From Trichoplax adhaerens (lineage: Eukaryota > Animalia > Placozoa), in contig NW_002060946.1 in NCBI RefSeq assembly GCF_000150275.1, forward strand, positions 1,879,454 to 1,943,453: 64,000 nt of DNA, in the 5' to 3' direction. The translations under genes were made by a program, and so were the position numbers. Below the pieces are notes generated by a model. It saw only the letters and a list, made by a program, of their open reading frames with translations. It searched no databases and had not been told where the DNA came from. Of the stretch, positions 11,582-49,700 are shown piece by piece. How positions within the stretch are numbered: the first letter of the stretch is position 1; every line of letters starts with the position of its first letter.

Positions 11582-11836
11582 ATGCAAGGGGCAAATATTC
11601 ATCTACATTTTCATCATGGTTTTAATGATGACTGTTACGGTAGCGAAGATGATGATTATCAGGTTAATAGATGGAATGAAATTGGTCAAAATTTACAACA
11701 ACTAGCTGATCAATTTGATTTGCAGACAAGGAAAAATTCTTCTTCTTGCTGGAGTAAAAGAATAGTTCGGATGGTTTTACTTCTTGGGATTACCTTAATA
11801 ATATTTGTCTTGGCTTGGATCTACGCCTTTCATTGA
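11582..11836 (+). CDS. Candidate BH3-only protein A (84 aa) with C-terminal transmembrane anchor
   Basis: ATG at 11582 (the ORF-track TTG start is two codons upstream). Acidic N-terminus, BH3-like motif IGQNLQQLADQF at 11681-11716 (compare BMF IARKLQCIADQF), then basic residues and a hydrophobic tail VLLLGITLIIFVLAWIYAFH. GTAAGT donor at 11872, 35 nt after the stop. Confidence 0.75.
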   Translation: MQGANIHLHFHHGFNDDCYGSEDDDYQVNRWNEIGQNLQQLADQFDLQTRKNSSSCWSKRIVRMVLLLGITLIIFVLAWIYAFH

Positions 11837-20466: not shown

Positions 20467-20682
20467 ATGGATCAAGATACAACCAACGAGATCGATGAAC
20501 AAGTTTGGCCTGATATAGGGGCTGATCTAAGGCTCCATGCAGACGAATTTGACAATCAATATCGCCGAAACTCCAATCTTGAAATGGTCATTGCCACATT
20601 TGATGGTATAGTTCAATCAGTGCTATTTCATCAAGTTCTCCGGATCGTACTTCACATCACCGGCAATTATCATCGCCTCTAG
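20467..20682 (+). CDS. Candidate BH3-only protein B (71 aa), PUMA/BIM-like
   Basis: EQVWPDIGADLRLHADEFDNQYRR resembles PUMA EEQWAREIGAQLRRMADDLNAQYERR. Amphipathic C-terminus LFHQVLRIVLHI. 12/23 identity with protein A across W..IG..L...AD.FD.Q.R.NS. TATAAAA at ~20142 and GTAAGT donor at 20712, 29 nt after the stop. Confidence 0.75.
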   Translation: MDQDTTNEIDEQVWPDIGADLRLHADEFDNQYRRNSNLEMVIATFDGIVQSVLFHQVLRIVLHITGNYHRL

Positions 20683-37417: not shown

Positions 37418-39740
37418 GGGCAGCAGTGTTGATATATAGCGCCGTGGGTTCCCTTCGGTGTTCATTTTGCTTGAAAGAACATCAGGACTCGACCAATTTT
37501 TCGTGTATCGGTCATCTCCAAATTATAACTTACAAGCTGCAAATCAATTTAAACCACCTTGGTTCGTATATTTTTGTTCCAATTAGAACTAAAAAAAATT
37601 GGGTTTTATCCTAAAGTGCAACATTCAATCGGTATCCGCATTACTGTAGTTGGTCTACTTCGTCGAAACGCCTTCAACCACCTGAGAGTCGCATTGAATG
37701 GATGATGCAGATAATATACGTGCTGAAGAAAGGAGGCTATGGCACATTGACGATTTTGCCGAGAACGCTGTACCAAGAGGAAGAAATTATGCTTGGTATG
37801 ATAATCTTCCTTTAATGCGGCGATATTTACGATATTTGCTGCAAGCTTGGCAACAACTACGCTATATTTTCTTCTAGTTGATGGAAACAATTCATTTCTA
37901 TTAAACGTTGAATTGCATAGAAAAAAGGAAAACTTTAATTTTTTTTTGTCTACGTATTTTCGTGCTGTACCATGTTCTACGTGAAGTACACCGATGATCG
38001 TAGCTGGTTTTAATCTGTATAAAACGATGCTGTCTATACTCTTTCTTTCCTTTTTTTCCATATTCTGCTTTGTGCTGGATACACTTAGCAAGATATGACT
38101 TTTTTGATCAATTTCGTATGAATTATCAGGTTATAAAGTTTCAATGCTCTGTAGTTAAATACTACTGTATGCGACAGTGTGATATCCAGTGGTCAATACA
38201 GTATTCAGATGGAATCGCCGTAGGCGGTAGTGCCGGTGAAAATTTGTTGTAGTCAACTTGGTAGTATGATGCTGTAGTATCGCTGATTTCAGCCATATCA
38301 AGTTATCTTGTAATTCTTTCCACTATTATCCATCACCTGTTTGTCATCAATCGCTTGGATCCGCTGTTAATTTCCGAAAAAGTAGCAGAGTACAGTACAA
38401 TATTATTATTATGAATGACCTCTGTAAACAGTGTGTGGACGGACGTACCATGTATTGCGCATGTTGGTCAGCTGCAAAGACTTTCACAGTATGCTGTCTT
38501 ACTCTGAAAAGCGTAAGCGGTACCGATTCCACCTGTAGAGGTAACAAACTGAATTAACCTCCTTGTTATCCTACAAACTAGAGTAAACTCTATACAGTAT
38601 TGTTATTCTTTTTTAGTTCGTTAGTCGGTTAGATAGTCAACTAGTTTTTCAATTGATATTTAATTGTAAAGACTATAATCTTGGGTGCCAAGATTCCTTC
38701 AGTAATAAATGATAGTAAATCTCTGACTATCTCGTCTACATCATCTGTGACGCTATAATTATACCATAGTATTCGGTTGTTGGAACTGAATTATTTGGTG
38801 ATATAGCTAATCTCGCCTCTTTAAGTTAGTAAGTGGCGTTCTACGCAAGGATTGGCGTGTGTAGACTACTTTGTTACTAGTGGTGTGTGACAAGTATCTA
38901 TATACAGATGTATACAGTACTGTACAGTACATATCGATAAACTACAAGCCGACGGACGCGTACGCAATCGAACATGAATTTCAATTGTAACCGCAATGTT
39001 AACTAGTTTTTAATTTTCTTCTTGTCATCGAGGTACAAATTTGTTACTCGATATGTTATGCTTGATTGATTATATATTGTTATTGTTGTACAGTATATAT
39101 AGTTAGTAATAGATTAAATACGATATCTTAACCATAAAGGCATAAATAAAGGAAACACTATACTGTATATGTACGTATACTGTACTGTATGATGATTGTA
39201 TGGTAGTACTTGTAATACAGTAGGTGATAACATTGTAAAAGGCGGACTGATAAGCTACTAATTGTAGTGCGAAGTATAAACTGTAATCGTATCGAGGTGT
39301 AACCTCGTGTAGCTGTAAATACCGATCAACTAATAATAAAATGCGGTTATCAATCTTACTCACGGAGTGAACTTATTATTGAAGAACATAACAGTTATTA
39401 CATGTAAAGTCAATGAACAGACTGTATTTGAAGATATTTTGCTTCATGAAAGGATAGACTAGAGAAATGGCGATGCAGTAATATTTGATATTTTGGTAAT
39501 GATGGAGTACAATCCGTATATTATGACGTCACAAAATGATGACCATTTTTCAATCAAGTATAGAATCCATGATCGCGCTAATTAACTTACTGTCATAGTT
39601 AATTTACTTTCATCGATCGACAAATTTTTCAAATCGTGTAAGACGTATTACTATTCATAAAATATATCTTGATAGCGTAATTTAAATTTAAATTTGTATT
39701 GATCAATTAACTCTATTAATAGCCCTACATAGGAACTTTT
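37418..39740 (+). repeat. Segmental duplication copy 1 (direct repeat of 43215-45170) carrying the BH3-dead paralog
   Basis: Long near-identical blocks with copy 2. Segments unique to copy 1 at ~38580-38897 and ~39085-39395. Confidence 0.95.
37698..37877 (+). CDS. Duplicate of protein C with mutated BH3 (59 aa); BH3-dead paralog or incipient pseudogene
   Basis: Manual translation: MDDADNIRAEERRLWHIDDFAENAVPRGRNYAWYDNLPLMRRYLRYLLQAWQQLRYIFF*. The ORF is intact, but AGRRLRRIGD has become EERRLWHIDD. Confidence 0.6.
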   Translation: MDDADNIRAEERRLWHIDDFAENAVPRGRNYAWYDNLPLMRRYLRYLLQAWQQLRYIFF

Positions 39741-39745
39741 AGGTT

Positions 39746-40978
39746 AACAATAGGTCTAAGGCGCATCTTGCGAAGATGCGCCTTAGACCTATTGTTCCCG
39801 TATGAAAACAATACAGCATGCATAGTAGGCGTGAACCTTCAGCAGCTAGTAGCAAAACGGCGTAGAATCTACTGCCTTTGCTATTAAACGAAAATGTTAC
39901 TGTACAGTACTGTATGCCATACAGTAGGATAAAGCTGGTGTCATGTCTAGTACTGTGGACGTTCGCCAGTTTTAATGAACGAACGTGCGAACGTCCAATT
40001 TGAACGTCGGACGTTCATTGAACGTACCAACGTACACAGTGTACAGTGTTAACACTACAGTATATAGTGTACACTGTACTGTACAGTAACCGTGCATTTG
40101 TACAGCATACAGTACAGTACATTACAGTACAGTACAGTACTGTACACAGTACACGATATAAAGTTACTGAACCTCTGACAGGTCTACACGGTACGGTATA
40201 AAGTTACTGAACCTCTGTTAAATGAGCACATTATCGTAAACCGTCAGTAAAGCGACGGGAGTTTGCACTACTGTACAGTAGTGACTCTGAAATACAAAGT
40301 GTTGTACTGTAAAAGACGTTTGTACTACTGTACTGTATGTACAGTACTGTACTGTACTGTATAGTATTGGGGTGGGATTATACAAACTGACTGTATACAC
40401 TGTACTGTACACTGTACACTGTACAGTACAGTTCGTCGACGTCCGATCTGACAACGAACGTACATACCGAACGTCCAAAATCGAACGTCCGTTGGACGTC
40501 CAATCGCTCGACGTCTACAGCACTAGTCATGTCTACTGTACTGTACTGTACTACTGGCCATTGCAATCTCCTTCATCGTACAGTAGCGTTCAATCGATCA
40601 AGCATTGAATTTTGTTAACCATTTTTTTTTTTGGGTTAACAAAGTTCAATGCTTGATCGATTGCACGCTACTGTACGATGTACGATGAAGGAGATTGCAA
40701 TGCTGGCCACTAGTATGATACAGTAGACATGGCACCAGCCTTAAATGCTCATTGTTAAACTGTACAGCGTGTATGGAAAGTCTCCAAAGACTTTCCAGTA
40801 TTTTTCCTAGAAATTTGAAACATAAATTCCTAACATTTTCGTTTAATTGCATAGGCAATAGCTTCTATGTCGTTTTGCTACTAGCTGCTGAAGGCCCACG
40901 CTTACTATGCATGCTGTATTATTTTCATACGGAACAATAGGTCTACGGCCGCATCTTCCTTTCCTTAGACCTATTGTT
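39746..40978. mobile_element. Two head-to-head copies of a ~340-bp hairpin-ended non-autonomous element (possibly Helentron/HINE-like)
   Basis: 39785-39899 is the reverse complement of 40831-40945, and 40558-40620 of 40635-40702. Terminal hairpin at 39746-39796. Further partial copies at 42984-43115 (+) and ~37355-37418 (-). Ends abut TTAA. The family assignment is inference. Confidence 0.6.
39948..40525. mobile_element. Non-autonomous hAT-type element (MITE), 578 bp
   Basis: TAG...CTA termini and 15-bp TIRs (tagtactgtggacgt / acgtctacagcacta, 2 mismatches). 8-bp TSD gtcatgtc at 39940-39947 and 40526-40533. The empty site is visible in the related copy at ~43075-43095. Subterminal AACGT/GACGT repeat arrays. 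Confidence 0.85.
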
Positions 40979-43214
40979 CCCGTATGAAAACAATACAGTT
41001 TAAACAATAAGCAGTACGTACAGTAAATACAGGCCAAAAATAGAAAAGTCTATTCAGCTCGATGGATGTTGCTTCTTAGTTAAATTGCCCTATTTTTATC
41101 GTTATACTGATCCAATCATTGATATATATTAACAATTATATGAATAGTGAACAATTTGCAATATGTTATGTATCTCTTTCTTGAAGATTAAGCTATAAAA
41201 GTTAAAAATGAAGTAAAAACGCTGCCCAAACCCGATCAAATTATTGATTTTCTAACCCGAAATGAGCACAATCGCTATACAAGCACTGCATTAGCACAGA
41301 ATTACTTGACTTTGAATCCCTCCCTGGAGTTGGGTTTGAGGTTGACTTTATTAAGGACACTAATGCTGGCTCTTCTCGGCCACCGTAGATAGCTGACTGA
41401 GAATGAAGGTTCCATTGATTAACGAGTCACCGTTTCTTTACAAATCTCATTTACTGTATATGACGTATGTACACACTATCCAGTATTATTTGCGAGTTAA
41501 GATAAAAAAGTTTATTCTCTTCCGGATGAATTGCTTATGTATTAGCAGCAGAGCTTATCTTCATATTTTGAATAGCTAGTCAATAACTCCTACCGTACTG
41601 TAAAAGTAAAGTAACCAATCTCAAGTACACGATCACTAAGTTAGTACACGTTGCAACGCGTTGTAGATCATCTTATATTCAATTAATTATTTGTCAGGGA
41701 CTACTGAAGGAAAGAGAAAGAGAGACAGAAAAGGATTTTTCATCGACAAAAATGTGAGAATCGATTTTTTTGCTGGTCATTTGGCTATACCTGAAGACTG
41801 AAAGCGTACAACGTCACCAATCACCTTGGAGGCACTTTTTTGCGAGCACACTTGTAAACAATGTACTGTACTGTACATTCAAGTGTACAAGTGTACTGTA
41901 CAGTACGATGTGTTCATTTCCTTTCAGACTGGGAAAAAGGGAAGAACAGTACCGAAATCAAGGTCAAATTACTATACTTTATACCATAATGGAGCTAGAG
42001 AGCTGAACTTTTTATACAAGTTGATAGAATTAAATGTCTATGCAAGAAGAGTCGAAGCAGATAGTAATCATTACTATGTACAATACTTTGCCATGCCAAA
42101 GTTGGAAACGAAAATAAACCCACGTTTACAGGCGGAGGGGGTTCCATTTTTATCGATGAAAAGTCGTCGTTTCCTGTCTCTTCCTTTTTCTTCCGTACAG
42201 TGTACAGTACAGTACACTACAGTACTGTATAAAATGTACTGTCAACATTGAACAATAAGTCAAGCAAGGTTCGACCTTGGGCCAATCAAACGATAATGAT
42301 TTAAATGCTGTACCGCGGTCTTTTCGTACAATACAGCACAGCACAGTACAGTACTGTCAACAACAAATCCAGCAAGACTCGACCTTGGGCCGGCAGATTA
42401 GCTAATCAAACGATGGTGGTTTAAATACTTTAAACAATAACAGTGATAATAGACAATATACTGTATATCACACTAGGCAATTGTCGATATTATGATAGCC
42501 CTTTAATAATCAATTAAAATGTTCCACTTAGCGCGCATTCAAATGTAAATGAAGCGTACAGTACATACTGTACGTACAGTACAATAGAGAGAGGAAAGAT
42601 AAAACCGCTATTGAATGGCATAGTACGTACAGTAGAAGTTGACCAACGGTATTACAGTACTGCAAGACTGCAAAGTACTGTACACTGTACAGTATGTTTA
42701 TGTGTACTGTACTGTACACACAAACTGTGCAGTATGAATAGAGTGTGTGGAAAGTCATTTGATATTTGTACAGTACAGCGTTTACGGGAAATTTTTGTAC
42801 TGTACAGTGTACAGTATACTGGTGTACTGTACAATGTACAGTACACGATAGTAGCGGATGTCGGAGACCTTTTACTATTTTGAACCCCCAAAAACACCAC
42901 GGGCGCTTTATTATTTTAATAAGAGTGTAGCAAAAATTCATGCTAACTACAGTCTTTCAAATAACTTGATTGATCATAATTCCTTAACAAAGTTCAATGC
43001 TTGATCGATTGCACACTACTGTACGTACGATGAAGGAGATTGCAATGCTGGCCAGTAGTATGTACTGTATGATACAGTAGACATGACACCAGCTTTATCC
43101 TATGGCATACTGTACAGTACTGTACTGTACAGTACAGTAGAACGATCGAACGAGGAGTCAGTCGATTGTACTCTACGGTACAATGTACTGTAGTGTTTCC
43201 CAAAAAAATTAGGG

Positions 43215-45170
43215 GGGCAGCAGTGTTGATATTTATAGTTAGCATTGTGATATATAGCACCGTGGGTTCCCTTCGGTGTTCATTTTGCTTGAAAAAACAT
43301 CACCACTCAACCTTTTTTTCCTGTCTCGGTCGTCTCCAAATTATAACTTACAAGCTGCAAATCAATTTAAACCACCTTGGTTCGTGTATTTTTGTTCCAA
43401 TTAGAGCTAAAAAAATTGGGTTTTATCCTAAAGTACAACATTCAATCGGTATCCGCATTACTGTAGTTGGTCTACTTCGTCGAAACGCCTTCAACCACCT
43501 GAGTGTCGCATTGAATGGACGATGCAGATAATATACGTGCTGCCGGAAGGAGGCTACGGCGCATTGGCGATTTTGCCGAGAATGAAGCACCAAGAGAAAG
43601 AAATTATGCTTGGTATGATAATCTTTTAATGCGGCGACATTTACGATATTTGCTGCAAGCTTGGCAACAACTACGCTATATTTTCTTCTAGTTGATGGAA
43701 ACAATTCATTTCTATTAAACGTTGAATTGCATAGAAAAAAAGGAAAACTCATGGATGACCGGTGACACTAGTTGGATAGTGTACGCACTTGGTATCTTGA
43801 GAAAAAAAAAATGAACTTCTTAATTAATTTAATATATCTTACACGTACATAGCTAAACGATTTACTGTGCTTCGTGAATTCTAATATATTATAGTAAGCT
43901 AAACATAGTCTAGCTTGCATCCAAGTGAAAGTGAATATTTTCTTAACTTCAACTTTTATTTTTTTTTGTCTACGTATTTTCGTGCTGTACCATGTTCTAC
44001 GTGAAGTACACCGATGATCGTAACTGGTTTTAATCTGTGTAAAACGATGCTGTCTATACTTTCTTCCCTTTTTTTTTTATATTCTGCTTTGTGCTGGATA
44101 CACTTAGCAAGATATGACTTTTTTGATCAATTTCGTATGAATTAACAGGTTATAAAGTTTCAATGCTCTATAGTTCAATACTACTGTATGCGACAGTGTG
44201 ATATCCAGTGGTCAATACAGTATTCAGATGGAATCGCCGTAGGCGGTAGTGCCGGTGAAAATTTGTTGTAGTCAACTTGGTAGTATGATGCTGTAGTATC
44301 GCTGATTTCAGCCATATCAAGTTATCTTGTAATTCTTTCCACTATTATCCATCACCTGTTTGTCATCAATCGCTTGGATCCGCTGTTAATTTCCGAAAAA
44401 GTAGCAGAGTACAGTACAATATTATTATTATGAATGACCTCTGTAAACAGTGTGTGGACGGACGTACCATGTATTGCGCATGTTGGTCAGCTGCAAAGAC
44501 TTTCACAGTATGCTGTCTTACTCTGAAAAGCGTAAGCGGTACCGATTCCACCTGTAGAGGTAACAAACTGAATTAACCTCCTTGTTGTCCTACAAACTAC
44601 AGTATATACAGATGTATACAGTACTGTACACTGTACAGTACATATCGATAAACTACAAGCCGACGGACGCGTACGCAATCGAACATGAATTTCAATTGTA
44701 ACCGCAATGTTAACTTGTTTTTAATTTTCTTCTTGTCATCGAGGTACAAATTTGTTACTCGATATGTTATGCTTGATTGATTATATTGTTATTACATGTA
44801 AAGTCAATGAATAGACTGTATTTGAAGATATTTTGCTTCATGAAATGATAGACTAGAGAAATGGCGATGCAATAATATTTGATATTTTGGTAATGATGGA
44901 GTACAGTCTGTATATTATGACGTCACAAAATGATCATTTTTCAATCAAGTATAGAATCCATGATCGCGCTAATTAACTTAATTAACTTACTGTCATAGTT
45001 AATTTACTTTCTTTGATCGACAAATTTTTCAAATCGATCGACTAATTTTCAAATCGTGTAAGACGTATTACTATTCATAAAATATATCTTGATAACGTAA
45101 TTTAAATTTAAATTTGTATTGATCAATTAACTCTATCAATAGCCCTACGGGACGTATCATAGGAACTTTT
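43215..45170 (+). repeat. Segmental duplication copy 2 carrying intact BH3 gene C
   Basis: Direct repeat of 37418-39740. Segment unique to copy 2 at ~43749-43955. Confidence 0.95.
43515..43691 (+). CDS. Candidate BH3-only protein C (58 aa), absent from the ORF track
   Basis: Manual translation: MDDADNIRAAGRRLRRIGDFAENEAPRERNYAWYDNLLMRRHLRYLLQAWQQLRYIFF*. The core LRRIGD is identical to BIM. The basic/hydrophobic C-terminus resembles the BIM tail (RLLRYIVRLVW). In-frame TGA immediately before the ATG; TATATAG at ~43251. Confidence 0.72.
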   Translation: MDDADNIRAAGRRLRRIGDFAENEAPRERNYAWYDNLLMRRHLRYLLQAWQQLRYIFF

Positions 45171-46708
45171 TTCTTCGACCTTCAGTAATAAAGTATGCTC
45201 TTGTAGCATTAAATATTCAACGGTCTAGTTTCTTATTGATTATTTGAATGTCAATCAGTATACAAACTTAAAATTACTTCCTTGAGGTCGCTTCCGGGTA
45301 CACTTGGAATCATTTGTTTATATTGGGATAGCATGCGTTTGGGGATGATGCCGAGAATTTCTCTGGCAAGGATGGATATATTGTATGTAAATAGGATGGT
45401 ACTATGAGCAGTTATTTTGACGCCTTATTTTATCAATGTTAGCTGAATTCGTTTTGGACGTCTCATTATTTTGGGCCAATTTGGAACGACTCGGCTATTT
45501 CTGCTTAGTTTATTTACCGTCATCAATTGATTTATATAGCGGTTTATACAATTGTCAGTCAGGATTGACACTAATTTTAAGTGTTTCAGATATAGCATAT
45601 TTTGTTCACTTTAGTAATGCTCTGCATATTGGCAATAGTAATTTGTAGAATAGTTACTGTATAAGAGCCGCAAAAATAATGTTGATAAGAATAGAAAACT
45701 ATAATCGGCGGTGCCGTAAATAGTCAAGGTTTGTCGTACTCGAACATGAATAAATTAGGGTGTATTACTGTTTACACAAACTTTCGAGGACAGATTGGAT
45801 ATCATTAATAAGGATTTTATAGCAATTCATTTAATAACAATTTATTGCTGGTGGAAAGGGGTTTCTTTGCGGTCAATAGATGAAAAATCAAATTAAATGA
45901 ATGGAAAGGTTGACACTAAATATCTTATTCCATTGATCCGCTGAATGTCAGTCATACCTAGTATGTCGTTAAAAGTATTTAAAAAGGATATAATTAAAAA
46001 TCGCTATTCGAAATATTTTATTTCTACATCATGCGTATATTGCTATGATATTAGCATTAAGAATACAGATATCAAGAGGATCCAACACATTCGTTATCGA
46101 AAAGTAACTGAGTAAAAAAGTTCCCTTGCAGTCTGGATGCAGTAAATAGCATTAATTTCTACGGAACGTATACTTTATTCAGCAAATTAAAATAAGTGTA
46201 TGTATAGAGCAATAATATTGGTTAGAAATATTAGCGATATAGCTATATTCTATATCATAACTGAAGATATTCCATACGGCTTAGATATTTTCAAAGAGAA
46301 ATGAGTTTAATCGCATATTTACAATAAAACTAGTCAATTATTCAAATTTGGACTATAATTCCATTTAGAGGTATCAACTGACAATTAGGATTTATTCATA
46401 TACAAGCTTCCATAGAAATTTATCTACAAAATCGCAGTATCTGAAATGTATCTTTCAGACGGTTAAAATTAAAACTTAGTTACAATAAAACTTTAATTTT
46501 AAAAATGTAATTAGTACGATACTTAATTGAAAGAAATTCAAGTGCTTTATGAAGTAGATGGAGGGAGCATTTGGATGTAAGGAATAATAACCATCACTGT
46601 GAAGCCTTGACTGGGCGTAGATATACTTTTAGTTTTTTTTATACAACATTCTCATTTTTTATAAATATTATTAGAACGTTTTCAAATGTTAACGATAGTA
46701 ATATTTTA

Positions 46709-49700
46709 CTAGTCGCTGCATTCGGGTGAACTTGATCGTATATTGTATTCTTCTTCGGTCGTAGTACTTGCTGCCGGAGATGAAACTTTAGTTGGTGGTA
46801 ATGGCTTAAATGGATTTAAACTGCGTACAGATTTTCCACCGCGCGTGTTTACTTCTTGAGATTTCGTTAACAGTGGTGGCATAAATGAAGACTGTAAATT
46901 GTTATCATTAACGTCAGGTTGACTTGAAGTTATCACAGATTGTGATAAACTTCGAGTCGTTGATGGCGTTACTGAGCTCATTCGTGATAAACTTTCGCTT
47001 TCTTCCGTTGATGAATCTACGTTATTCCTATTATTACTTTGCCAAAAAGGACTACTCAAAAACTGATTTCTGCTTTTATTGGACTGAATTGAAGAGGGTG
47101 TAGGGATTTCGTCTCTGGAGGACATGATCGAGCTTGAAGCTGCCGATTCACTACGACTAGGAGTATCTTGGTAATCTTCATTAGTGCCAAATTTGGATAA
47201 TTCAGAATACTTACTATCCCAAGCAGGTTTAGTTCGGCGCGATAACGATGGCAGACTTGAAGCAGAGTTAGGGCGAAAAACTGTTTTATCAAATTTATCA
47301 TTGCGAGATTTTTCTTCGCTACTCATCCTCCTATCCGAAATACTTTCACTAATACTGTTTCTCGCTTGAGTTTGAAATTGAGTATCAGGTTGAATCGATC
47401 GAGTTCTTGTCATTTCTTCGGAGGACATTGGTCTGTTTCGATTTGATTTTCGTTGTGATCGAGCCGAGTGACTCCTGTCGGTAGCTCTATTAGATAGATT
47501 ATCTGAGACTATATCATTTTTTGTCGGAGTTAAGGTTCGAGAAGATAGTTCAGTATCATTGTAACTGGATGCAATGCTTGACCTTGCTTGAGTTACATCT
47601 TCAATAATTATTGAATCTTCTCGCTGTACCTCTCTATTGTTAATTTCATGATCACTTTGACTAGAGATAGCATCCTCTTCTTGAGATACTAAATGCGCGG
47701 GATTTGGACTATTAATGGCTAATCTATATTTTTCCATTAACTCCTCTAATCTTTCATCTGAAATTTCAGTTCTGTCGGATTCCAAATCAGTACCAGTTCG
47801 AGAAGTGATTGGAGTACTGATGGAGGATCTGCATTGTTCAAGTAACTCTTGCAATCTGCTCTCATCGACGCTTTGGGTATCATCCTATTTTCATCAAGGA
47901 TTGATGCCATTATTCAATAGTAATCATGATGTGGCTACATGAAGAATCTTAAAAATGTAAGTGAATGAGATATAATATTAATTTACCTCTTCATCATATT
48001 TCATTTTATGCAATTGTTGTTCAATGGTCTTAAGGCGATGATTTAAATCTCGTTGAAATTTCGTTTCAAATAAGCTATACTCTCCTAGACCTAGGTAGAT
48101 GACAAGTGAAATAGGTTCATACGAGTGTTTCCCTAAATATCTCAAAAACCTTTCAGTAGGCAGGATATATGTCTATGATCAGTACCATAGTTATCGATAT
48201 CGTTTTCATCAGCTTGCCATGCTATTATTTCATCTTTAACGAGACTCTATAGGATTAATTGTCAACATATTGGAAATACAAAATGTTAAAAGTTGCTATT
48301 GTACTGCAAAATTGCTCATCTAATCGCCAATAGTTGTAAAAATTTATTTCTTACATCGATTTTAGTTACACTAGTAATATTTTCAGTCATATCTTCATTT
48401 GGAACCATAGTTAAACTTTCGAATTTATCTGCCGGCATGATAGATTTCAATTTTCTAATTGTCATACAAGTAAGAATACAAACTTTACTGCAAGAAATAA
48501 ATAATCAGAAGCAAATCGTGACTACTAGAAAATTAAAATTTCTCAGTCGTACGTATCAATGCTATCTAAGATCTCTTTTTCTCGCTTTTCCGGAAGAAAT
48601 CCATTTGAAAGATTTTTAGAACTTGCAATATGGGTGTTTGTCTGGTTGATATGGATTTAGTATCCGCATTAATACCAATAAAGTCAAATAGGCATCGAAA
48701 CAAGACTGTGATTATTGAATATAATCTAGTACCGTCTCAGTTTCGTCTTGATTTTCATCCGCTTCAAGCAAGAGCTGCTCAATTCTCTTTTTTTCTTCAT
48801 CTGTCATCGTAACTATATTGGCCGCATCTGCTGCGAGCTATGTCAGCCAATAAAACTCTTGTGTTACTTATTACAATTACGTTAATAGCAGGGATCACTC
48901 AAGAAATTTTTTTCTCCCATTCCCATACACGGGAAGGAATTTCTTGAGTAGTCCCTATTAACAGATAGAGAATTATGTTATATCTCAATCTAATATGATT
49001 ATATTACAATACCTCGATATTTCTTCTAATATAGTTTTTATTTTTAGAGTCCGTTTTTTCACTTTTTTGGTTACTATGGTGCCTTTTATCGTTTTTTCCC
49101 TTTTGCTTTCTGCTTTGTTTAATCTTTCTATGTATTCGAGTCCTTGTCATTTCTGAATGATTTTCAGTTCGAACATTGGATTTTTTGCTACTCGATATCT
49201 CTGTAGCTGCCAATAAATGGTCTCAGATATATATTTGATTGATAAAACAACAAACAGAAACATCAATATAGAAATTTACCTTGTTCTTCATCTGATATAT
49301 CGGAAAGGTTGTAATTGACATCTAGATTACTTTCAATTAGTCCCGGCGGTTGAGTAGCAAAGAGAGGTGAAAATGTTCCAGAATAAGCTTCTATTTCCTC
49401 ATCGTCACTGAAAGCTATGCAAAAATCGAACATCACTACAAAGAAACATCTTCAATGCTTATAACTATAAATTAACCTCTTACAGTTACGAGTAAATACT
49501 TTATAGAATTATATCAGATTACTTGATAAATCGGGCGCAGGGCCAATAGCGTTAATGTGATTTTTAGATAGTAAAGCAATTTCTTTTCCTTCTCGTTCGA
49601 GTTGCCTTTGCTGCTCTATTAACTGTTGTGACCATTGAGATTCTAACACTAGCCGTTTCTTCTTGACTTCTTTTTCTTTCTATTTATTGATTCATCATCA

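Follow-up and report, generated by a model that had tools for sequence, protein, structure and literature searches.

A candidate BH3-type peptide in a probable young, recently duplicated micro-gene of Trichoplax adhaerens

The subject of this analysis is an open reading frame (orf) of 58 codons in the placozoan Trichoplax adhaerens, lying at positions 43515-43691 (+ strand) of a 64,000-nucleotide stretch of contig NW_002060946.1 (1,879,454 to 1,943,453, forward strand), referred to here as the window. The orf starts with ATG, closes with a stop codon, and reads as the full 58 residues that an initial annotation of the letters alone had proposed for it as an unannotated gene. We put at about 0.35—roughly one chance in three—the probability that its product acts as a BH3 ligand. 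The locus itself is strongly indicated to be a young, lineage-restricted Trichoplax micro-gene, TATA-driven, unspliced and polyadenylated, with an RNA of about 1.94 kb, and a diverged tandem duplicate lies about 5.8 kb upstream.

The BH3-like helix and its modelled partner

The reading frame, its motif and its C-terminal helix are as follows.

43515-43691, + strand: 58-codon orf, opened by the first ATG of the transcript and the longest + strand orf within it (codon usage, ESM and AlphaFold2).
43542-43580, + strand: BH3-like motif, residues A10-E22, A-G-R-R-L-R-R-I-G-D-F-A-E (sequence and modelled interface).
43623-43688, + strand: C-terminal basic amphipathic helix, residues L37-F58 (hydropathy, hydrophobic moment, and a predicted local distance difference test score, pLDDT, of about 90).

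In BH3 register A10 stands at h1, G11 at the first small position, L14 at h2, I17 at h3, G18 at the second small position, D19 at the Asp position and A21 at h4. The core LRRIGD with G11, L14, G18 and D19, and the atypical Ala residues at both h1 and h4, are therefore present in the sequence just as the initial annotation had described them. Arg accounts for eleven of the 58 residues. From the single sequence, AlphaFold2 predicts helix throughout, unbroken but weakly hinged over residues 21-30, with a mean pLDDT of 81; the product as modelled consists of two amphipathic helices.

The partner was taken from the genome, where Bcl-2-fold loci number exactly four. In all of them exon 1 stops directly behind the BH2 Trp and a GT comes next, at an intron position that is conserved across animal Bcl-2 genes. 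Exon 1 of one of these loci matches chain A of PDB entry 6YLD with an E-value of 3.7e-95, and 6YLD was deposited with a study of Trichoplax adhaerens Bcl-2 proteins (PMC7527217). On this match the genome belongs to T. adhaerens or to a very close relative. The complex was modelled from the 58-residue product and residues 30-174 of trBcl-2L2, that is, exon 1 only, with the exons unjoined and the last ~8 residues of the crystallised construct missing.

In the resulting model the helix sits confidently in the trBcl-2L2 groove, in a check of the kind that had been put forward, structure prediction with a Bcl-2 homologue: the interaction score from predicted aligned errors (ipSAE) is 0.81, against 0.01 for the best of three controls, although the score may be memory of solved Bim complexes, comes from a tool uncalibrated on peptides, and shows likeness, not binding. 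Of 78 solved complexes 51 reach the mark set for ipSAE, and of 108 mismatched pairs two do. Three runs of the complex agree in at least 67% of contacts, with a partner pLDDT of at least 55. The modelled interface takes in residues 3, 6-15, 17-22 and 25 of the peptide, and the contacts of lowest error are D19 with R125 (of the NWGR motif), G18 with G124 and A128, I17 with F87 and L83, L14 with L116, and I7 and A10 with V112.

These residues can be set beside what is published on Bim. The Trichoplax proteins trBcl-2L1 and trBcl-2L2 bind the human Bim BH3 at 83 and 41 nM, respectively (PMC7527217). Mutagenesis of Bim places h1 outside the sensitive positions, and the changes L62A and F69A cost 18-45-fold on Bcl-xL and Bcl-w, whereas F69A costs just 2-fold on Bcl-2 (PMC2213596). 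Aligned with Bim, the 58-residue product keeps every individually essential position (G11, L14, G18 and D19) and lacks only ones that are tolerated singly, h1 and h4. Its N-terminal helix carries the small residue after h1, the h2 Leu and the Gly-Asp pair that are individually essential in the Bim BH3.

Just three family names occur among its ESM Atlas look-alikes, Noxa (0.78), PXT1 (0.76) and a Bim/Puma/Noxa group (0.75), all below the 0.9 level and to be taken as leads only. Against trBak, the top BLASTP segment coincides with the BH3 motif of that protein, GRHLAQLGD (E 0.15). The product has no other BH motifs and no Bcl-2 fold, as expected of the BH3-only class, with no Pfam match and a two-helix model.

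The C-terminal segment had been described as a BIM-like tail. The tail LLMRRHLRYLLQAWQQLRYIFF is there as stated, Arg- and Gln-rich as well as hydrophobic (4 Arg, 1 His, 3 Gln), but it is no tail anchor: its top 19-residue Kyte-Doolittle mean is -0.37, its hydrophobic moment 0.48-0.54 and its net charge +4. Tail-anchored proteins have a C-terminal hydrophobic transmembrane segment of ~18-22 residues, and in its place the 58-residue product has a basic amphipathic helix.

The transcription unit and its coding potential

The unit around the orf consists of the following.

43250-43257, + strand: TATA-like box ATATATAG, ending 17-19 nucleotides before the starts of RNA-type contigs, in the first nucleotides of the stretch that the paralogue shares (homology from 43241).
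43274-43514, + strand: 5' leader, 241 nucleotides, ATG-free (contig starts at 43274 in run X1 and 43276 in run X3).
43692-45213, + strand: 3' untranslated region (UTR), ~1.5 kb, unspliced (X1 contig and alignments to the second copy).
45187-45192, + strand: AATAAA polyadenylation signal, 21 nucleotides before the end of the X1 contig (contig ends at 45213 in X1 and 45180 in X3).

Twenty public sequencing runs, from eight studies, contain this stretch, and four of them were mapped on 41500-46500. X1 gives a single contig of 1940 nucleotides, 43274-45213, unspliced and with 0 mismatches; X3, from a different study, gives two contigs, 43276-44081 and 44065-45180. In both, depth is zero in the flanking bins except at short high-copy repeats, a pattern of RNA rather than of genomic DNA. 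X20, a declared RNA-seq library of organism B, covers 43434-43894, and X13 covers the flanks too and is fragmented, as expected of DNA with both paralogues. Because the TATA box and the AATAAA lie at its two ends in this orientation, the unit is read on the + strand; the strand is derived from these signals and not from the contigs. The orf consequently lies on the sense strand of a unit with RNA-type contigs from two studies, and since the contigs are unspliced it stands complete by itself rather than as one exon of a larger protein.

Short palindromic repeats, TACAGTAC/GTACTGTA, flank and interrupt the unit (43106-43139, 44617-44642, and many more sites in 40000-43200). At these sites the summed contig depth in the RNA-type runs reaches ~1400, with many joints to other loci, which indicates that the repeat is present in many transcripts or loci genome-wide. 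A search of 43100-45400 against Rfam returned no family, only a sub-threshold plant miRNA match on a flanking palindromic repeat.

Several properties of the RNA bear on whether the orf is translated. The 241-nucleotide leader has no ATG, against 42 in the whole RNA, and 1.3% of segments of that length in the window are ATG-free; the first ATG of the transcript then opens its longest + strand orf, and 2.8% of the ATG-initiated orfs of the window reach 58 codons. With a codon-usage table drawn from five Trichoplax exons, the score of the sense frame is +9.9 bits (0.17 per codon, the level of the trBcl-2L2 exon) and that of the other five frames -9 to -24; 4% of the 122 ATG-initiated orfs of 45-80 codons in the window score as high. 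ESM recognition of the product is 2471, a level reached by nine of 100 shuffled sequences. The orf is open in all three copies in the genome, and the sole indel among them is in frame. Taken together, a real and translated micro-gene at 43515-43691 is probable.

The same observations bear on an opposing explanation, in which the RNA is non-coding, or transcriptional noise from a recent tandem duplication, and the 58-codon orf is untranslated, its motif having arisen by chance. The orf makes up only 9% of the 1.94-kb RNA, its ATG has a T at -3, and conservation does not extend past organisms A and B. The copies diverge in a neutral-looking way, and they are mosaics whose long stretches of identity are what gene conversion, not selection, typically leaves. 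Against this stand the ATG-free leader and first-ATG position, whose chance is roughly 1 in 40 to 1 in 80, codon usage that is positive in the sense frame only, the ESM value, the open frame in three copies with its in-frame indel, and a confident helical model from a single sequence. We regard the non-coding explanation as unlikely.

The tandem copy and the antisense frame

Two further copies of the orf are present in the genome, one at 37698-37877 in the window (copy 2, the orf at 43515 being copy 1), and a near-identical one on C933, a contig of 2.5 kb that probably represents a haplotig of copy 2.

37422-39728, + strand: unit-sized segment of copy 2, a tandem duplicate ~5.8 kb upstream (blastn blocks of 93.4%, 97.9%, 94.8% and 88.7% identity).
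37698-37877, + strand: orf of copy 2, 59 codons, still open, with one extra in-frame Pro; its motif reads E-E-R-R-L-W-H-I-D-D-F-A.

The duplicated segment is the whole unit, 43241-45170 corresponding to 37422-39728 with several indels, and copy 1 has a specific insertion of ~200 bp (43750-43950) in its 3' UTR. A perfect 24-nucleotide inverted repeat with a 3-nucleotide loop is found at 39736-39786, exactly where homology between the copies ends; copy 2 thus has a different 3' end, without the AATAAA of copy 1. X1 assembles copy 1 cleanly through tracts that are identical to copy 2, and copy 2 is for this reason probably silent or rare in the X1 RNA.

The motif changes from copy 1 to copy 2 include G11E and G18D, and by comparison with Bim these are the equivalents of two changes that abolish its binding. 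Hand counts of copy 1 to copy 2 changes give nine GC-to-AT and three AT-to-GC within the orf, and 13 and 18, respectively, outside it; these substitution directions hint weakly at copy 2 as the decayed member of the pair.

The two copies diverge patchily, with 12 substitutions in the first 86 nucleotides of the orf, nine in 43295-43332 and none in 44197-44586. This last tract, ~390 nucleotides of the 3' UTR, is identical between the paralogues, and also in organism B where its contigs reach, whereas in the motif region 600 nucleotides upstream the paralogues differ at 14% of sites. The identity suggests either recent gene conversion or a constrained RNA element. In the leader of copy 1, strain X3 has the copy-2 states at 43406 and the insertion after 43408, and its orf remains of the copy-1 type. 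The pattern as a whole resembles mosaic gene conversion in which the motif region has escaped erasure.

We considered whether the clustering of N-terminal substitutions (12 in 86 nucleotides, p 8e-4) reflects positive selection and rejected this: the second island of substitutions at 43295-43332 and the long identical tracts point to mosaic gene conversion, so that clustering is no proof of selection, and when the two copies are compared in the sense frame, the ratio of nonsynonymous to synonymous differences per site (pN/pS, Nei-Gojobori) is 0.88.

The 58-codon orf is overlapped by two longer frames, as the initial annotation had cautioned, one of 121 residues that starts with TTG on the + strand and one of 109 residues on the antisense strand.

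43423-43752, - strand: antisense 109-residue orf, rejected as a gene (ESM, Pfam, codon usage and signal orientation).

Were the antisense orf the true product, the 58-codon frame would be its shadow. It is the longer of the two, is open over the shared segment in both copies, and has a pN/pS of 0.29, with seven of 13 substitutions at sense codon position 2, a result that speaks against the sense frame at face value. Frame +2, however, which has stops and shares its third codon positions with the antisense frame, gives a lower ratio still (0.18), and the value of 0.29 is therefore an artefact of position class. The antisense orf has an ESM recognition of 1175 with no match, no Pfam family and a codon-usage score of -0.08 bits per codon; its N-terminus is unlike between the copies because of the 200-bp insertion, and the TATA box and AATAAA are oriented for the opposite strand. 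On these grounds we rejected it as a gene and hold the explanation highly improbable. Transcription or conservation of the antisense frame alone had been named as the finding that would count against the peptide; the evidence points instead to a unit on the + strand.

Weight of the evidence and comparison with known systems

A number of results weigh against a BH3 ligand at this locus, the first of which concerns the motif itself. Its consensus, as reportedly set out by Aouacheria et al. (2015), runs h1, small, x, x, h2, x, x, h3, small, Asp, acidic, h4, with four hydrophobic positions. Compared with this form, the 58-residue product has G11, L14, I17, G18 and D19, with Ala at h1 and h4 and Phe at the acidic position after the Asp, so that the full consensus is not reproduced in its sequence. 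Nor is the core hexamer informative by itself. The back-translated LRRIGD pattern has eight sites in the 105.6-Mb genome (105,631,681 bases, 1414 contigs), versus 22 for a reversed control pattern, and just one of the eight, the orf at 43515, translates exactly as LRRIGD, which makes it unique across all frames of the genome. One LRRIGD among ~2x10^8 six-frame positions does not exceed chance, and the hexamer alone has no weight; with its count at the chance level, the case rests on the gene-like context.

The second group of these results concerns conservation. The motif is unconserved, copy 2 and the C933 copy both reading EERRLWHIDD (core LWHIDD versus LRRIGD), and the comparison of copies gives no sign of purifying selection. 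Searches for relatives of the 58-residue product were blank throughout: a word-indexed search of 5.8 billion clustered proteins, an exact-product look-up, HMMER over 1.84 billion representative proteins, hmmscan against Pfam with E-values up to 10 (its PUMA model and its Bim models, Bclx_interact and Bim N-terminal, among those covered), phmmer with E-values up to 10 over every chain in the PDB (with no Bim chain matched), and a profile of the three copies against JGI metagenomes. At the level of sequence the product cannot be shown to belong to the Bim family or to any other.

The remaining points concern the RNA and the tail. The RNA label of X1 and X3 is a guess of the tool, and their contigs carry no strand information; a 3' UTR of 1.5 kb is long for an orf of 177 nucleotides. 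A tail anchor was considered and rejected, with the hydropathy mean of -0.37 compared with 2.7 for another frame of the window, candidate A, described below.

An alternative is that the micro-gene is real and translated and its BH3 likeness is the coincidence of an Arg-rich amphipathic helix. The peptide would then bind membranes or some other partner through its amphipathic helices, or be a young de novo protein without a settled function. This account draws on the same gene-level evidence as a BH3 ligand does, and it is favoured by the deviations at h1, h4 and the position after the Asp, by a motif that differs in the paralogue at a pN/pS of ~0.9, by the orphan status of the orf, by an exact hexamer that is within genome-wide chance, and by a composition (11 of 58 Arg) in which 'RR' is unremarkable. 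What it leaves as accident is that the four retained residues, G11, L14, G18 and D19, are precisely those individually essential in Bim, that the model sets them in canonical register with an Asp-Arg pair and scores far above the controls, that the paralogue has both of the Gly-to-acidic changes known to kill binding, and that small size and an N-terminal motif match a Noxa-like architecture. We judge the coincidence somewhat unlikely.

Among specific hypotheses we favour a BH3 ligand. In that case helix 1 (residues 3-25) of the product would be the BH3-type element, with L14 and I17 entering the h2 and h3 pockets, G11 and G18 permitting close packing, and D19 paired to the NWGR (BH1) Arg, in trBcl-2L2 and probably in trBcl-2L1 too. 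Affinity would probably be modest because h1 and h4 are Ala. The peptide could compete with trBax and trBak for the groove and so lower the threshold of mitochondrial permeabilisation, a sensitiser role, and its basic amphipathic C-terminal helix may keep it at the membrane surface. Copy 2, with G11E and G18D and not visibly expressed, would most simply be a disabled duplicate. The complete scenario, in which copy 1 is a working BH3-only sensitiser of recent origin in the Trichoplax lineage rather than of an ancient family, its short 'death motif' having arisen or been retained in a de novo micro-gene whose twin was disabled by Gly-to-acidic changes, we hold to be doubtful.

Two surveys have reported that no BH3-only gene is findable in Trichoplax, and have proposed that early animals ran mitochondrial apoptosis on multi-motif Bcl-2 proteins alone, with trBak standing in as sensitiser (PMC7527217; PMC8998228). 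In the later literature we found no paper reporting a Trichoplax BH3-only gene. The scenario, if true, would supply a lineage-specific BH3-only gene in placozoans, which are reported to lack them, and would show the birth and death of a BH3 motif in one duplicate pair. A product that engages trBcl-2L1 or trBcl-2L2 would challenge the multi-motif-only model and would accord with the idea of BH3 motifs as short linear motifs of repeated origin. Recombinant proteins, a protocol for isothermal titration calorimetry, crystals and a cell assay already exist. Should binding fail, the locus would still be a clean, unannotated and recently duplicated micro-gene, and would show how easily a 'perfect' motif arises by chance.

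Some further sequences were met in the course of the searches. A genome profile search gave a fourth, weak match at C1411:3662492-3662614 (E 0.043, two stops, 35% identity to copy 2 over 37 residues), which may be a decayed relic or a chance match and was not counted as a relative; it follows the copy 2 states, but the profile is two-thirds copy-2-like and the match cannot show which copy is ancestral. Homologues of the neighbouring Ser-rich exon of 381 residues (46712-47854, - strand), which is part of a well-expressed gene, occur at 51-52% identity on a pair of short AT-rich contigs, one from an ENA metagenome assembly and one from a Logan run, presumably from a distant placozoan. Neither contig has a match to the 58-codon orf, and the longer (4.2 kb) ends before the position where the orf is expected.

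The initial annotation had listed two other BH3 candidates in the window, A and B, and had supposed that the 58-residue product might form a second subfamily beside them; no similarity of the product to either is detectable. In candidate A (11582-11836, + strand) a BH3-like stretch precedes a truly hydrophobic tail, whose 19-residue Kyte-Doolittle mean is 2.7. Synaptobrevin (PF00957) is its top Pfam match, with residues 36-83 aligned to profile positions 41-88 of 89 (E 1.9e-4, 21.6 bits, below the cut-off of 26.4). Rather than a BH3-only gene, candidate A may be the terminal exon of a tail-anchored, SNARE-like protein. Candidate B (20467-20682, + strand) has only a very weak Pfam match, to PUMA (E 0.26, 12 bits).

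Three known systems offer the closest comparisons. Bim (BCL2L11) has the same six-residue core, LRRIGD, a small residue three positions before the Leu, and a helical amphipathic motif; it differs in having Ile at h1 and Phe at h4, where the Trichoplax peptide has Ala, and 'DEF' in place of 'DFA'. The hydrophobic C-terminal anchor of Bim is absent from the peptide, and the likeness is limited to the short motif, without detectable homology. Noxa (PMAIP1) and other minimal BH3-only proteins are of similar size to the 58-residue product and share a single BH3-type helix with an 'LRR-hydrophobic-G-D' core. At 0.78, under the reliable level, a Noxa cluster ranks first among the named ESM Atlas look-alikes; it has no sequence homology to the orf. 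In Trichoplax itself the comparison is with trBak (trBcl-2L4), the sole proposed BH3-only-like sensitiser of this animal, which is a multi-motif protein with a Bcl-2 fold and a transmembrane tail, whereas the product described here is a peptide without that fold. The core of trBak, IGRHLAQLGD, resembles AGRRLRRIGD of the peptide, and the groove of trBcl-2L1 and trBcl-2L2 would be the putative target common to both.

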